Positions 1 through 59,043 of a stretch of 64,000 nucleotides of DNA are shown in pieces; positions within the stretch are counted from its first letter, which is position 1; each line of letters begins with the position of its first letter. Made by a program: the position numbers and the translations under genes. Origin of the DNA: Zygnema circumcarinatum SAG 698-1b (lineage: Eukaryota; Plantae; Zygnematophyceae); NCBI GenBank assembly GCA_037447605.1, contig CM074814.1:1-64000 (forward strand). The letters are read 5' to 3'. The notes below the pieces were generated by a model. It was not told the DNA's origin, ran no database searches, and saw only the letters and a list, made by a program, of their open reading frames with translations.

Positions 1-199
1 TGTCCATCCACCCAAGAGAAGAAAATGAGCACAAAAAACACACACATTGCAGTATTCGCATTTTCAGATGATCACATACAGTTGAAAAAATTTATATCAA
101 AAATTTTCGAGCGTGCAGTTTTGCTGAAAATAAAAAGACTACCAAAAGCAGTGGACGTTTCAAAAACCCCTTCAGGGTTCAGGGTAGAAAAAAGAGCAT

Positions 200-1010
200 A
201 ATTTCAGAAATTCAATGGTTGCCAACCATTGGATCACTGGTTCCAAACCAGTCGAATGGTTGTTCCAGTCCTGCGCCGCTGGTTCGCAACCAATCGACTG
301 GTTGCCAACCAGTGGCATCCACTGGTTGGAAACCAATCGACTGGTTGCAAACCAGTGGCATCCACTAGTTGGCAACCAGTCAAATGGTTGTTTCGCTCCG
401 CAACCACTGGTTGGCAACCAGTCGACTGGTTTGGAACCAGTGGATGCCACTGGTTGGCAATCAGTCGAATGGTTGTTTCGATCCAGCGGGACTGGTTGGC
501 AACCATTCGACTGGTTGCCAACCAGTGGCATCCACTGGTTCCAAATCAGTCAAATGGTTGTTTCGGTCCTCAACCACTGGTTGCCAACCAGTCGACTTGT
601 TTGTCTAATGGTCCGATCTGTGATACGTTTCACAGTTCGGACCAGTGGATCGGCAACCATTGGACAACCATTGGATGGCAATGGTTGGACGTCTACTGGT
701 TGGCAACCAGTCGAATGGTTGTTTCGGTCCGCAACCATTGGTTGGCAACCAGTCGAATGGTTGTTTCGGTCCGCAACCACTGGTTGGCAACCAGTCGAAT
801 GGTTGTTTCGGTCCGCAACCACTGGTTGGCAACCAGTCAACTGGTTTGGAACCAGTGGATGCCACTGGTTGGCAACCAGTCGACTGGTTTGGAACCAGTG
901 GATGCCACTGGTTGGCAACCAGTCGAATGGTTGTTTCGATCTGGCGGCACTGGTTGGCAACCAGTCGAATGGTTATATCCATTAAATCAAATGGTTGGCA
1001 ACCGTTAAAT
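200..1010. repeat. Complex palindromic minisatellite, ~42-bp unit (GGTTGGCAACCAGTCGAATGGTTGTTTCGGTCCGCAACCACT and variants), block 1
   Basis: Near-identical 42-bp units run in tandem at ~700-840. Palindromic cores GGTTG(G/C)CAACC and CCAGTCGACTGG recur throughout. The stop-poor unit explains the many overlapping ORFs with 14-aa repeats. Confidence 0.9.
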
Positions 1011-1234
1011 CACTAGTTGTAGCGAACTGAACGCTACAGCTACCAAAATGCCGTCGGCGTTTTGGAGAAAACTATTACGGTTCGGCCGTACAGAATCTCC
1101 GTACAATCATACGACTCGGCTGTACGAATCCGTACGCATCTGTACGCATCAGGCTTGTTAACGGTCTAGTTGACGGCTAGTTGTCAACGGTTGGCAACCC
1201 ACCAAAAAACACATACGACCCATTTTTGCAATTT

Positions 1235-1520
1235 TTTTTAATTTCAGAAATTCAATGGTTGCCAACCATTGGATCACTGGTTCCGAACCAGTCGAATGGT
1301 TGTTTCAGTCCTGCGCCACTGGTTCGCAACCAGTCGAATGGTTGTTTCGATCCGGCGGCACTGGTTGGCAACCAGTCGACTGGTTTGGAACCAGTGGACT
1401 GGTTTGGAACCAGTGGATGCCACTGGTTGGCAACCAGTCGAATGGTTGTTTCGGTCCGCAACCACTGGTTGCCAACCAGTCGACTGGTTTGTCTAATGGT
1501 CCGATCTGTGATACGTTTCA
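1235..1520. repeat. Second, shorter block of the same palindromic satellite family
   Basis: Begins with the same sequence as block 1 (AATTTCAGAAATTCAATGGTTGCCAACCATTGGATCACTGGTTCC, cf. ~200) and ends with TTGTCTAATGGTCCGATCTGTGATACGTTTCA, as at ~600-632. Confidence 0.9.
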
Positions 1521-54031: not shown

Positions 54032-55738
54032 TCTTCACAATTCTTGCTCAAAATGTCGGCGATCAGTCTCCTTGTTCTTTACATCATCAACCGCCTCTGT
54101 GGCAATGGAGCGCTCCTCAGGTTCCTATACAGAATTGGGTTTCACAAGGTTCTCTCTCCCATGTCACAACTCGCGCAATAAGTGGAAGAAACTGAAGTCC
54201 GTGAGTTCACTTCTGATATAAGTACGTGCAAAGGCTTGCTGCCCCGAATGTCTCGAAGCGCAGCAGCGTAAGCAGCGGAAACCTCCCTGTTCTCCAGCTG
54301 TGGAAGGGGAAGGAAGGCCCCTTAGTGCAGCGCAGTGGGCCCTCCCTCCCTGCGACCCGCCCCTCGCCAGCGCTCAGCGCTCCCCCACCGCCGCGGTCGC
54401 CCTCCCTTGCTGATAGCGCACGCTCATCGCCTCGCTGCCATTTGTGCTCGTGCTCGTTCTCGTTTCCAAGCTTGGCCGCGTCTTCCCCTCTTTGCTCGGT
54501 CTCTTGTCTCTTGCCTCGTCTTCTGTACTTTATGTACTTTTTCTTTTTCTTTCTGTGGCCCTTTCGGATTTTGCATCGAGAGTATTCGAATGCAGTCAGG
54601 TCCTCGTCCTACCGATGCTGATCGAATGAAAACGCTCCCACTATACAACGCAACTCGAGTACAGTCTGAAGGCCAAGACTCACTCATTCCAGCACCGAGG
54701 GTCAACACAAGGCCAACATCGGTTGCACCTGCCGACGAGAAGATCACAGACTGACTCGCAAGATGTCTGGGGATTAGCTCGGCCTGCAGGGAATGTTTTC
54801 TCTTGGGTTTCGACGATGGTCCTCTGACTCGATCTATTTTTCGTCCCCGGGCGAATTTATAAGTCAAGTTGTTTGAATATCGAGATGTTATTATAGGCAG
54901 AAGACCATTGGGCAGGTCCTACTGTACTCCAGAGCTGTTCAAATGCCGTCCAAGAAATACATTGGTGACTTGTCATCTGGACCAATCCAATCTCCCTCGA
55001 GGGGCTCCGAAGTTTGTTCGTGCCCCTGTGATGCTCGCCGCTGCACAAAACCCTGCTACCTTTACATCCGCGATTCACACGGACCCGCGAGGCAAGAGGC
55101 ACATGCGCGCAACATCATGGCCCAAACAGCTCCGTACGAGCAGTTCTGAATTAGCACTCAAGCTCCCATTCACTCAACACACTCAAGGAGGCCAATCTGA
55201 GCAGAAGCGTGCCATGGCCTGCTTGCAATCTGTGCAGCACGCGTCCCGCAGTCATCCTCCGTACAGTCGATTTACTCCACCATGACAGTAAGGGTCGAAC
55301 AAATCTCTGAGAGAATTTATGGACTGACAAGTGAAAGAGCCAGGTAGCCAAAGTTCCCGCGGTAGCGAAACCGTGACCACAAGCGCAAATATAATACACA
55401 TTCTGAAGGCCGAACAATCTCCCGCGCGGCCCTTGCGTCCGCTGCCTGGCAAGGGGCAACAAGCGCCACGCGGGCATTCCGCTCTGTACGGGAGTCGACA
55501 CGTGCGTTTCGCTAGCATCGTGTTCAACCCCCCCAGTGCTCGATGTCCGACTCCGACCTGAAAACCCTAAAAATTCTAACCATGCTTACGACCTATTTTG
55601 GTAAACCTGTGTCTAACCAATGAGAGAAACGATCACAAAGCCGAAGTGAAGAAGGAAGCATTGTGGCTCGAAGACAAATCCAATGTACATGGGCCGCCCC
55701 TTCAGGTGCAAGCCAGAAGAAATGTTGCCCAGTGCGAC

Positions 55739-58134
55739 CTAGTTGAGGCGCCGCCGCTTGTTCCCAAGAATTGCAGCTTTTGTAATCTCCAGCAGCAGGT
55801 GAGGAGACTTCTCCAGCTCTTCTCCCAGACTTGGTTTAGTATCAAAATTGTCGAGGATAAACTGTTTGCAGACGTCCTTTAGAACAGGCGCACCATACAT
55901 GTCCGCGGTATTCAGAAGAAAACAAACATTTCTCTCACGTACCTGCAACACAGTGCATAGTTACAGTATGTAAAACGCTAGAAAAATAGCATAACTTCAC
56001 AGAGACCGCAGTTACTACAAATACGGGTCATAATGTCAATAGAGAAAACGCTTTACTTCTGAGCTCACACCTTCCCACAAAATTGTACAACAACAGAGTG
56101 CTGTCACAGCTTCCTGAATGGATTTTCTTCTCGATGGCTTCTTCCATGACTTCTTGAAATAGTTCTTCAACGACTTGCGCTCGCTGGAAAACCCAGTGAT
56201 GTAACGATATTGTGATTACTATTTTTAGTCTTTACCTTTCAGGATTTAGGTTTCCAACATATTGCCGTCGAAAAGATCAGGTATGTTCGAGACTGAATCA
56301 TAACACCCATTTCACGAATCAGACGACTGCCAAACTGATTATGCCGACCAGTGAACCACTTTCAATTTTCATAACCAAAACGACTTACTCTGCCCAGAAG
56401 AGCCACCTCACATTCCCGCTTTAGAGAAGGGAGCATATACTCCTCAGCAAGCATCAAGAGCGCAGCTGCCTCTTCTGCCTCTTCCGGCATTTCGACCTAT
56501 TAACACACAACGTCAACCACTCCGTCAAGCCAGCCAGCAACAGAAATAAATAAGAATCCAACGCAATTTTTGCTGCCAACCTAATGTGGGCCAATGAAGT
56601 GCGCACTGTTTGTGTCAACCCATTGGAGGCCTAGGCTGCGGAGCAGAAGCCAAACATCAACGAAAATAGTAACATCAAATTAGGCCCTGATCATCAATTT
56701 ATGCAGAAGCTACACTCCTGCAAACGACACCCTGACAAAAGGTACGCACTTAGGAGTGTTCAGCACAGACAAAGCCCTCCTGTTGGTTGTTTCGGATCAG
56801 AAAATCGCCAAGTCGAGATACTCAATGCACGCAAGAGCAGTTTCCAATTGAAACATAGCATGGAAGACATACTTCGTCCGTGTATAAGTAGCGCAGTAGA
56901 ATTCGCATCAGCTGTGGTTGATGATCAGGCAGCGAAACTTCCTGTTGACGGCCCTCGGCAAAATTCACCGAGAACATTCCGCGAAACTTTTCACTTCTGG
57001 CACACAAGATTGCCTGCACCCAACCATACCGTCTGCTTTACCATTTACTGAGACTTGTACGAGGGAGGGAGGGAGGGAGGGAGGGAGAGTGAAAGAAAAC
57101 GGCTTGTGCCTGACAACATTACGATGCATCGAATATTTGAGTATAAAAAAAAACTGACCAGTAATTCAATACAAAGGGTTGGACAGAACAAACCTTTACT
57201 GCAGGAATCCGCATTTTTTCCCTCCCAACCAGTAGGACAACATCTGCAAACTCAGTGCGATTCAAAAGGTTGGTGAAATCGGCCACCCTGCAGCCGACGT
57301 CCAAAAAACCATTCGGTGCGTTAAAGACATTCAGACCAAGCGTGAAGTTGCACAATTCCAAATACGGTTGACTTCCGCAAAAAGTAGAATATATCCTGCT
57401 TCAAACATGGTTCAGCAAAATGAGATGTCTCAATTCACCTTGAAGAGGGAAACTTTGAAACACGATTGAGAAACGAAGGCTCATGCTTGACAAGGATAAC
57501 GTCCTGATCAATCATGAATAAATCGCTTGCAGAATGCGCATCACCGACTGTCATACCACCGAATGTGAACACAAGTGCGTCTGGTAGCACTCCCACCTGA
57601 TCATCAAAGCCGGAAAGAGACTGTTAGCAGCAGACGTGATGACTGCAAAAACCGCACACTGGATACAGAGAACAGATGATACTCGTTTACCCTGCGAGTG
57701 AACATCATTCATTCCATGGTATTTGTTGAATGACAACAAAAAACGAACATCAAAAGCCAAAAGATACATGAGAAAAGGCCCTGACGAATTCTAGATAGCA
57801 GGCTTACAACCACAGGAATGCACCAAATTGCTGATAAGTTTAGAAAGTCAAAAAGAAAAGGAAGACCACGGTTCAACATTCGACAAAGTGGAGCAACGGA
57901 ATATTAGAAGGAGAATTTGAAAAACAAATGTGACGCCGAGCTTTCCCATGTTTGCGGACTTACCTTTCCTGAAAAGGCACGTTTCAACTTCTTTAGCTTT
58001 GTATTGATGTTGATACGGAACAGCACAGTGGTGTGCTGCTTTGCACGAAGGAGCTTGGCGTCAGCGTCGGCAAAAATATCTTCTTCCGCTTTGACTGTAA
58101 GGCCAATTGCGGCGTTGTTGGCCAAATCCGCCAT
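55739..58134 (-). CDS. SUMO-like (Rad60-SLD-type) domain fused to a BTB/POZ domain and C-terminal helical region, 7 exons
   Basis: Exons 58134-57964, 57596-57439, 57287-57194, 57013-56873 and 56496-56407 are in phase; the boundaries at ~56183-56075 and ~55942-55739 are less certain. SUMO-like: IGLTVKAEE...VLFRININTKLKKLKRAFSGKVGVLPDALVFTFGGMTVGDAHSASDLFMIDQDVILV. BTB: FADVVLLVG...AILCARSEKFRGMF...EVSLPD...LLRYLYTD...LLMLAEEYMLPSLKRECE. Confidence 0.85.
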
Positions 58135-59043
58135 AGCTCTCCCGCAAGCTCTCCAGGGTCTTCCTCCTCCTCCTGCTCCTCTAGACTGGAGCGTGCATGA
58201 AGACGACCCTCCGGAAGGAAGGCCGCGGCGAGCAGGAGCACCGCTGAAGTCGCGAGTCGCGAGTGGAGTCTGGAACTCTCAGCAGCCACAACGCGCCCCT
58301 CCCTCCCTCCCTGGAGCGAAGCAGCGAACAGCACGCGGCGCCGCGCCACGTGGCGACCGCACTGGCTGGGCCCGCGGGAGGGAGGGAGGGAGGGGCCGGC
58401 CACTCGTGGTTCCCCGTCGCGCTGCTTTTGTCCGTGTGCCATCCGTGAGTACGATGTCAATTCCGCTTGGGCTCCCTCACACGGGCCGGGGAAGGTGGGG
58501 GGGGGGGGGCAGACACGCAATTATCGAACCGAAACTTTGGTGGGAGTTGCAGAGTTGCTGTTGTTGTCCTTCGTCTCAATGTCCACTTCCTTCGCTTACT
58601 GTTACTTTTAGTGTCTCGTACCTGTTCTCGTACCCGTGTTAAACAACGGTTTCAGGTGTTCTGTCACTGTTAGTACGCTTTTCAAAAGCCGTTGCCAATG
58701 GAAACAGAGTGCGATAGCAGTCGCTGCTGGGTGCCCGCCTTCTACGACATGCGTGTTCGAGCATGCGCCCATATACATGCATGCGCTTGCACGCAGCCGA
58801 CCAGAAACCATCGTCACAACACGCGTGCGTACAGTCCCCATTAGGACCTCTCAGAGTGCGTGCCCGCCAAGTGGGGTGCGCCCCCACCCCGCAGCGGTAG
58901 CGGCCGGAACAAGGCCGAAGGCAGCGCCAAGAGGCGGCAGCACAGCCCGCAAATTTGCATGACGGAGCCGGCAGACACCACGCTTTCTCCATACACAGAC
59001 ACCACCCATGTCGTAACAAGCAGAGGCCTCTGCAAGCGCAGAG

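Follow-up and report, generated by a model that had tools for sequence, protein, structure and literature searches.

The 64,000-nucleotide stretch of the zygnematophyte alga Zygnema circumcarinatum SAG 698-1b analyzed here (contig CM074814.1, positions 1 to 64,000 of the forward strand; hereafter the window, in whose coordinates all positions are given) carries on its minus strand, at 58134..55739, a gene that fuses a SUMO-like domain to a BTB domain. This gene of a streptophyte alga is real and expressed. Its N-terminal domain, as modeled on the closest relative P0005 and tested on the family, is a SUMO-family β-grasp with a fold nearest to SUMO rather than to ubiquitin. On sequence and model comparison, its remaining part is specifically a BTB-BACK half of the SPOP/BPM type. 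Because this half is nearest to SPOP and is preceded by a SUMO-like domain, the protein can be read as an SPOP/BPM protein in which the MATH domain has been swapped for a SUMO-like domain. From sequence, models, and analogy, we propose that it may work in the nucleus as a CUL3 adaptor, with the SUMO-like domain recruiting partners that bear SUMO-interaction motifs (SIMs) for ubiquitylation, a proposal on which our judgment is evenly balanced.

Gene structure and transcript evidence

Three minus-strand reading frames combine into six exons separated by five introns of 367, 151, 180, 376, and 446 nt (introns 1-5), all of them GT-AG. The coding sequence of 876 nt comprises 291 codons and a stop, giving a protein of 291 amino acids. 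The ATG lies at 58134 and the stop at 55741-55739, exactly the limits given by the first-pass annotation of this DNA. The exons are as follows.

57964..58134, minus strand: exon 1 (E1), 57 codons with the start codon, 88% identity to P0005; first strand, acidic/basic hairpin extension AEEDIF.D.D.K..R.K, strand β2, and helix α1 (VLFRININTKLKKLKRAF); junction to exon 2 in four runs
57439..57596, minus strand: exon 2 (E2), 52 codons and 2 further nt; remainder of the SUMO-like domain (FTFGG...DLFMIDQDVILV) without a GG, and the linker HEPSFLNRVSKFPSS at its end; both junctions in transcripts
57194..57287, minus strand: exon 3 (E3), 1 nt plus 31 codons; N-terminal BTB elements (VADFTNLLNRTEFADVVLLVGREKMRIPAVK); joints 57287/57439 and 57013/57194
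56873..57013, minus strand: exon 4 (E4), 47 codons; BTB core with the putative φ-x-E CUL3-contact motif GMFSVNFAE
56389..56496, minus strand: exon 5 (E5), 36 codons; C-terminal BTB helices, with weak BTB and BACK_BPM_SPOP matches and an alignment to SPOP
55739..55942, minus strand: exon 6 (E6), 67 codons and the stop; SPOP-type 3-box/BACK helices and the basic tail GNKRRRLN; joint 55942/56389

For transcript evidence, the contigs of four public runs, one from each of four studies (X1, X2, X3, and X6), were placed on the gene. The runs behave as RNA, that is, as transcript assemblies, because the depth over exons is 10 to 100 times that over introns. All five exon junctions are present as joints in the contigs of all four runs, the skipped lengths being exactly those predicted, and a single 634-nt contig covers E4-E3-E2-E1. 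Since the joint between E2 and E3 is found in every run and one contig spans E1 to E4, the SUMO-like exons and the BTB exons belong to one mRNA. The explanation that the fusion is a gene-model artefact, with the SUMO-like and BTB parts derived from two genes, is refuted by these joints, and its probability is negligible. Nothing now speaks for it, the 151-nt intron 2 having been a mere prediction until the reads were placed; in addition, both domains lie within one open reading frame (ORF) in eight relatives from other species. The single gene proposed by the first-pass annotation, which had named separate transcripts as the result that would overturn it, therefore stands.

The SUMO-like N-terminal domain

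The exons of the window were searched singly, and P0005, with 72-88% identity per exon, stands in for the joined protein in the scans and fold comparisons below. E1 alone matches the Pfam family Rad60-SLD (PF11976) with 16.4 bits (E 0.0082, profile positions 5-31), which is below the gathering cut-off of 23.8 bits (that of BTB, PF00651, is 20.5 bits), and E2 alone has no Pfam match. The single-exon Rad60-SLD score is low because an intron splits the domain. Among the structures in the PDB, the best match of E2 alone is SUMO1 residues 56-99 (E 0.02), with GVLPDALVFTFGGMTVGDAHSASDLFMIDQDVILVKHE paired with a stretch of SUMO1; E1 alone has no PDB match up to E 10 and no usable match in the language-model atlas. 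The two halves point to SUMO independently and in register across the junction, and the full-length relatives raise this signal well above chance.

The full-length relatives carry the whole domain and score 34.1 (P0005), 26.6 (P0002), and 39 bits (P0004) against Rad60-SLD, a profile matched by all eight family members. When the N-terminal region of the family profile is compared with the PDB, SUMO1 scores 68-69 bits (E 2e-18) and SUMO2/3 about 55 bits, whereas ubiquitin scores 12.8 bits per copy; a ubiquitin-type identity of the domain was rejected on this difference (12.8 bits per ubiquitin copy against 68 for SUMO1). The SUMO-like region of P0005 aligns with SUMO1 without a gap (32-96 to 29-93, E 7e-10). 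Its AlphaFold model has a predicted local distance difference test score (pLDDT) of 73.6, and the top 19 PDB fold matches are all SUMO1, with a template modeling score (TM) by target of about 0.9 and 33% identity; the remaining fold matches are SUMO2/3, Smt3, and Smt3 fusions.

The window sequence reads ...VILVKHEPSFLNR... at the place where a conjugatable SUMO has its diglycine; VKHEPSFLNRVSKFPSSR follows the last strand, and the frame then continues into the BTB domain. A GG after the SUMO-like fold occurs at that place in no family member. Without a C-terminal GG, the SUMO-like domain is neither processed nor conjugated. In all of this the first-pass annotation was sound: the peptides that it quoted from exons 1-2 are present as written, the SUMO fold that it suspected in them agrees with the profile (68 versus 13 bits) and with the β-grasp of the P0005 model, and the diglycine that it described as lacking is indeed absent from the in-frame passage to the BTB domain.

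Between the first strand and strand β2 lies a conserved segment of 12-15 residues, the hairpin extension AEEDIF.D.D.K..R.K, in which A16, E18, D23, and R30 are invariant and which is without counterpart in SUMO. The P0005 model folds this extension as a small hairpin, with a pLDDT there of only 60-72. MAFFT instead pairs part of the extension with the first strand of SUMO, a register in which it is the N-terminal strand that would be extra.

The β2/α1 stretch VLFRININTKLKKLKRAF aligns closely with VFFKVKRTTKLSKLKRAY of a real SUMO (hereafter the SUMO ORF). F39, I41, K46, L50, and K51 do not vary across a five-member set that reaches from Mastigamoeba to the streptophytes. The SIM-groove residues of SUMO1 are F36, K37, V38, L47, and Y51. 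According to the ungapped SUMO1 register and the alignment to the SUMO ORF, both the window protein and P0005 have F39, R40, I41, L50, and F54 at these positions, so that by sequence the residues of a SIM groove are in place; F39, I41, and L50 are invariant in the same five members.

The surface that in SUMO faces the SUMO E2 enzyme Ubc9 is less well kept. The SUMO1 E67 position is an invariant glycine in the family (FTFGG), in contrast to FLFEG in SUMO1 and FIFDG in the SUMO ORF, and the counterparts of SUMO1 R63 and E89 are V and L. We take E67, D86, and E89 of SUMO1 to be Ubc9-contacting residues and E67 to be required for backside binding; a literature search for SUMO1 E67R and Ubc9 found nothing. 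The acidic residue expected of a Ubc9-backside surface is thus missing at the E67 position. These residues bear on an alternative use of the domain, in which it would recruit the SUMO E2 (Ubc9/SCE1) by backside binding, in the manner of Esc2, NIP45, and the second SUMO-like domain (SLD2) of Rad60, and either couple the sumoylation machinery to CUL3 or lead to the ubiquitylation of Ubc9 itself. Integral SUMO-like domains do bind Ubc9 via the same surface as SUMO (PMC4939958), and the non-covalent SUMO1-Ubc9 complexes 2uyz and 2pe6 are among the SUMO1 fold matches. Against it, a charge reversal at a single acidic residue of Rad60 SLD2 (E380R) suffices to abolish Ubc9 binding (PMC4939958), whether or not E380 corresponds to SUMO1 E67. 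Because the key acidic position is an invariant glycine, backside binding of Ubc9 is the less likely use, and we consider it quite improbable. Of the two mechanisms offered by the first-pass annotation, SIM recruitment is favored by the conserved β2/α1 groove, while Ubc9 recruitment is disfavored by the glycine at the E67 position.

The BTB-BACK half and the predicted CUL3 interface

E4 alone matches the Pfam BTB profile with 38.3 bits (E 1.7e-9), above the 20.5-bit cut-off; the relatives score 65-90 bits, and P0005 scores 89.2. E3 has collinear tblastn matches from the relatives, and its alignment to SPOP falls at the beginning of the BTB domain. E6 matches BACK_BPM_SPOP and BACK in Pfam, both weakly, and BACK_BPM_SPOP is matched by four of the eight family members. 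The best PDB sequence match is SPOP BTB-BACK (E 1.3e-35, 126 bits), the next BTB family reaching about 74 bits, and the family profile alignment extends through the whole SPOP BACK domain to residue 355. The full-length AlphaFold model of P0005 (pLDDT 82, predicted TM (pTM) 0.57) consists of the β-grasp, a low-confidence linker, and a helical BTB-BACK part. Its best PDB fold match is again SPOP BTB-BACK (chain 4j8z_A), with a TM of 0.84 and a root-mean-square deviation of 2.3 Å.

The φ-x-E motif of the window protein is the F-A-E of GMFSVNFAE, five residues past the conserved M. This spacing is the same as in KLHL3 (M78...M83-S84-E85), and the motif aligns with the M-E-E of SPOP. The glutamate is invariant in all eight members. 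The φ-x-E motif and the 3-box have been described as elements forming the CUL3 interface (PMC3616122). The sequence elements of a CUL3 adaptor, namely φ-x-E in the α3/β4 region and the 3-box with the first BACK hairpin, are both found, in agreement with the BTB adaptor assigned in the first-pass annotation.

The streptophyte members end in GNK(K/R)RRL, and the basic KRRR of the window tail GNKRRRLN looks, by its sequence, like a nuclear localization signal. In Pfam, a MATH domain matches no family member, and Pfam scans of the exons and the relatives returned no further recognizable substrate-binding domain in the 291 amino acids.

At the BACK interface of SPOP, Tyr353 is aligned with a Thr in the family. 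Chain 4j8z_A has a glutamate there, presumably as the Y353E mutant. This position matters for a multivalent variant of the proposed adaptor, in which self-association through both BTB and BACK would produce linear oligomers displaying arrays of SUMO-like domains, a mimic of poly-SUMO that we consider unlikely. Such arrays would attract proteins with several SIMs, for instance SUMO-targeted ubiquitin ligases (STUbLs) and PIAS/SIZ-type E3s, and they would act as a decoy, as a condensate scaffold, or in ubiquitylation, an outcome that we consider no more probable. The profile alignment to SPOP residue 355 includes the region that dimerizes in SPOP, the P0005 model superposes on SPOP BTB-BACK, and BACK-mediated higher-order SPOP assemblies are noted in the literature (PMC3616122); the Thr in place of Tyr353 argues against oligomers of this kind. 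The multivalent variant is a refinement of the SIM-recruiting adaptor and no strict alternative to it.

Proposed mechanism

In the proposed mechanism, the BTB-BACK half would dimerize and dock onto CUL3 via the φ-x-E motif and the 3-box, like SPOP. The SUMO-like domain is probably the recruiting module because it stands at the place of the substrate-binding MATH domain of SPOP. It would offer a SUMO-type β2/α1 groove to proteins with SIMs, and these partners would be brought to CUL3-RBX1 and ubiquitylated in the nucleus. The logic would be the reverse of that of a STUbL, with the SUMO mimic on the ligase and the SIM on the target. A precedent is the first SUMO-like domain (SLD1) of Rad60, which binds a SIM-bearing STUbL (PMC4939958). 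The more far-reaching version, a "SIM-targeted" cullin ligase in which a self-associating, SPOP-like adaptor with SUMO mimics selects and ubiquitylates SIM proteins (for instance STUbLs, SIZ/PIAS-type SUMO E3s, or other SUMO readers) and so tunes the SUMO-reading machinery, is doubtful, if not without some chance of being right. The role in SUMO-ubiquitin crosstalk that the first-pass annotation suggested is one that we likewise infer, by analogy.

Several points weigh against the SIM-recruiting adaptor. The groove residues belong in part to the core of the domain, and they may be conserved for structural reasons. The hairpin extension may be the real binding surface, or it may cover the groove. 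The linker at 106-109 has a low pLDDT in the P0005 model, and the arrangement of the domains is undefined by the monomer model (pTM 0.57). Finally, the support from scans and folds belongs to P0005 as a stand-in and not to the joined protein of the window.

Integral ubiquitin-like domains with regulatory roles occur in many E3 components, and the SUMO-like domain could be a cis-regulatory or docking ubiquitin-like domain of this sort (compare Parkin, Rad23, and Elongin B) rather than a substrate receptor; we give this a low probability. Its task would then be to control the adaptor, to tether it to the proteasome or another complex, or to stabilize the BTB domain, and the protein would take its substrates by another part or serve as a substrate-less competitor for CUL3, with an equally low probability. 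Such roles have those other E3 components on their side, together with the lack of any other recognizable substrate-binding domain in the 291 amino acids by Pfam and the conserved hairpin extension, which is otherwise unexplained. However, the domain is SUMO-like (68 versus 13 bits), whereas proteasome-docking domains are of the ubiquitin type; it stands where the closest BTB family has MATH; and the model, with its low pTM and poorly defined linker, contains no confident packing of the domain onto BTB.

In known SUMO-ubiquitin crosstalk, reading goes in one direction, from the SIMs of a ligase to the SUMO of its target. An adaptor that brings a SUMO mimic of its own to a cullin ligase would, if true, open a second route, in which targets are chosen by their SIMs. 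It would also be a simple natural example of a CUL3 ligase directed to new targets by a swap of the recruiting domain on an SPOP-type scaffold. Should the SUMO-like domain turn out to be a mere regulatory appendage, the protein is one more BTB architecture.

Relatives and distribution

A HMMER scan of 1.84 billion representative proteins with E2 returned four relatives, of which P0002 (292 amino acids) and P0004 (295 amino acids) are full length; the match is at the same position, residues about 59-109. Word searches with the relatives found added P0005, P0006, P0007, P0008, P0009, and P0010. Both Rad60-SLD and BTB are assigned by Pfam in all eight relatives, and several of these are single ORFs on intronless transcript contigs. 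By tblastn, P0002 and P0004-P0007 give collinear exon matches on the window, which for the closest relative P0005 cover all six exons. The relatives with an assigned source are the following, and further ones with the same architecture are found among protist transcripts.

P0007: Klebsormidium nitens GAQ78878.1 (KFL_000200300), "hypothetical protein"; collinear PF11976 and PF00651
P0006: Coleochaete scutata; collinear architecture
P0004: Mastigamoeba balamuthi; collinear architecture
P0002: run ERR2041121, which is Gonatozygon kinahani (a zygnematophyte) according to a 2026 paper; collinear architecture

Members from Amoebozoa and from streptophytes have the hairpin extension in common, an argument that the fusion arose once. 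On present data, the family is old and has been kept in the Klebsormidiophyceae, Coleochaetophyceae, and Zygnematophyceae, the three algal classes closest to land plants. No named land-plant protein was found in word-indexed searches and one short-query HMMER scan (not a genome-level tblastn), and land plants seem, by sequence, to have lost the family. As a small, conserved, and expressed family of the algae nearest to land plants, it is a tractable candidate for binding assays and for the question of what disappeared when land plants arose.

The first-pass annotation had seen in the protein a possible new crosstalk component and had not recognized the architecture from land plants. The second point agrees with the lack of a named land-plant member. 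The architecture itself is rare but not new to the databases: public protein sets contain it, complete with precomputed matches to both Pfam domains, under the names "hypothetical protein" or "BTB domain-containing protein", and it is uncharacterized. Literature searches combining SUMO-like, Rad60-SLD, or ubiquitin-like domains with BTB found no paper on this architecture, the BTB matches mostly concerning SLX4. When the SUMO-like region of the Coleochaete protein alone was used in a word search, no more than 30 candidates were obtained, the sole other match being P0005. Among the nearest Atlas clusters, none of at least 50 members has both Pfam domains. The second-nearest by language-model features (0.89) is a diatom cluster of 73 proteins of about 317 amino acids, annotated only as BTB, which aligns structurally over model residues 8-288, including part of the N-terminal domain. 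From this model alignment, the diatom cluster may be a divergent SUMO-like-BTB family overlooked by Pfam.

A metagenome scan with a five-member alignment returned only an ordinary SUMO gene, on the 2-kb contig L005 (ERZ501005). This contig has a canonical eukaryote-type SUMO ORF at 149-370 (plus strand) that adjoins and overlaps a bacterial-looking DEAD-box helicase ORF at 381-1412 (minus strand). The arrangement may stem from chimeric assembly or from a construct with a SUMO tag.

Comparison with known systems

The closest known system is SPOP/BPM. The BTB, 3-box, and BACK elements have it as their best PDB match by both sequence (126 bits) and fold (TM 0.84), the φ-x-E motif is shared, and in both proteins a recruiting domain, putative in the window protein, lies N-terminal to BTB and a basic tail closes the C-terminus, in chains of roughly comparable length (291 amino acids here and 374 in SPOP). 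They differ in the SUMO-like β-grasp that replaces MATH and in the Thr that replaces Tyr353 of SPOP, and CUL3 binding is a prediction for the window protein.

Compared with SUMO1 and the other SUMO modifiers, the N-terminal domain has the same fold (TM about 0.9), about 33% of residues identical, the β2/α1 motif T-K-L-K-K-L-K-R-A-F/Y, and the common pattern GV...F.F.G...D.H...L.M...D.I.V. Unlike the modifiers, it is without GG, has the hairpin extension of 12-15 residues near the first strand and a Gly at the E67 position, and is covalently followed by BTB. Rad60, Esc2, and NIP45 (NFATC2IP) likewise have SUMO-like domains as an integral, non-conjugatable part of the chain, recognized by the Pfam profile Rad60-SLD, and the SUMO surfaces of Rad60 bind SIM proteins (SLD1 with a STUbL) or Ubc9 (SLD2) (PMC4939958). 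However, those proteins have two tandem C-terminal SLDs, N-terminal SIMs, and no BTB, whereas the window protein has a single N-terminal SLD on a predicted cullin adaptor and so lacks the tandem arrangement.

The resemblance to STUbLs such as RNF4 and Slx5-Slx8 lies in a possible way of working, SUMO recognition tied to ubiquitylation, and not in ancestry. STUbLs are RING ligases whose SIMs read SUMO on the target, while the window protein would read SIMs via CUL3. Elongin B, a ubiquitin-like protein, partners with and stabilizes Elongin C, a cullin adaptor of BTB fold. The likeness is meant as an analogy, and there are differences: these are two separate chains, Elongin B resembles ubiquitin and not SUMO, and Elongin C, which works with CUL2/5, has a short BTB of the Skp1 type. 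Among the relatives, K. nitens GAQ78878.1 shares the collinear architecture and the C-terminal GNKRRRLN, is 51-65% identical per exon, and differs in a longer alanine-rich N-terminus; no functional annotation or publication was found for it.

Untranslated regions, minor exon, and flanking features

Three further transcribed features accompany the six exons.

58135..58250, minus strand: 5' untranslated region (UTR); transcript contigs extend past 58250, and an in-frame stop lies upstream at 58281-58279
55650..55738, minus strand: 3' UTR; contigs of all four runs cover 55650-55942 and extend further
56236..56292, minus strand: minor cassette exon of 57 nt with an in-frame stop (SRTYLIFSTAICWKPKS, then the stop); joints 55942/56236 and 56292/56389

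The cassette is included at about 3-7% of the depth of the main junction, in X3 and X6. Because of its in-frame stop, inclusion would yield either an isoform without the BACK domain and basic tail or a target of nonsense-mediated decay. An exon-like open stretch at 56185-56070 was rejected as an exon: it would break the frame into E6, and none of the four runs splices it in.

At the 5' side, transcript contigs that begin at the edge of E1 continue without splicing for as much as about 1.8 kb past 58250, which reflects either a long 5' UTR or an overlap with the 3' end of the upstream neighbor. This neighbor on the same strand is a 343-amino-acid ORF at 60075-59044 (minus strand) ending in ...VDPQKFVRHVVYHIRKNPR. 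Owing to the in-frame stop at 58281-58279, the ORF of the gene and that of the neighbor stay apart. A contig of run X6 matches from 58139 on and is preceded by 255 unrelated letters; the 30-letter consensus beside this break occurs nowhere in the window. The break could come from an antisense transcript that uses the AG at 58135-58136 as acceptor, from a distant upstream exon, or from a chimeric contig. Short (GGGA)n/(TCCC)n runs lie in intron 3 (57064-57090) and in the 5' region (58296-58312 and 58378-58395), and positions 57054-57100 were skipped as a repeat in read placement.

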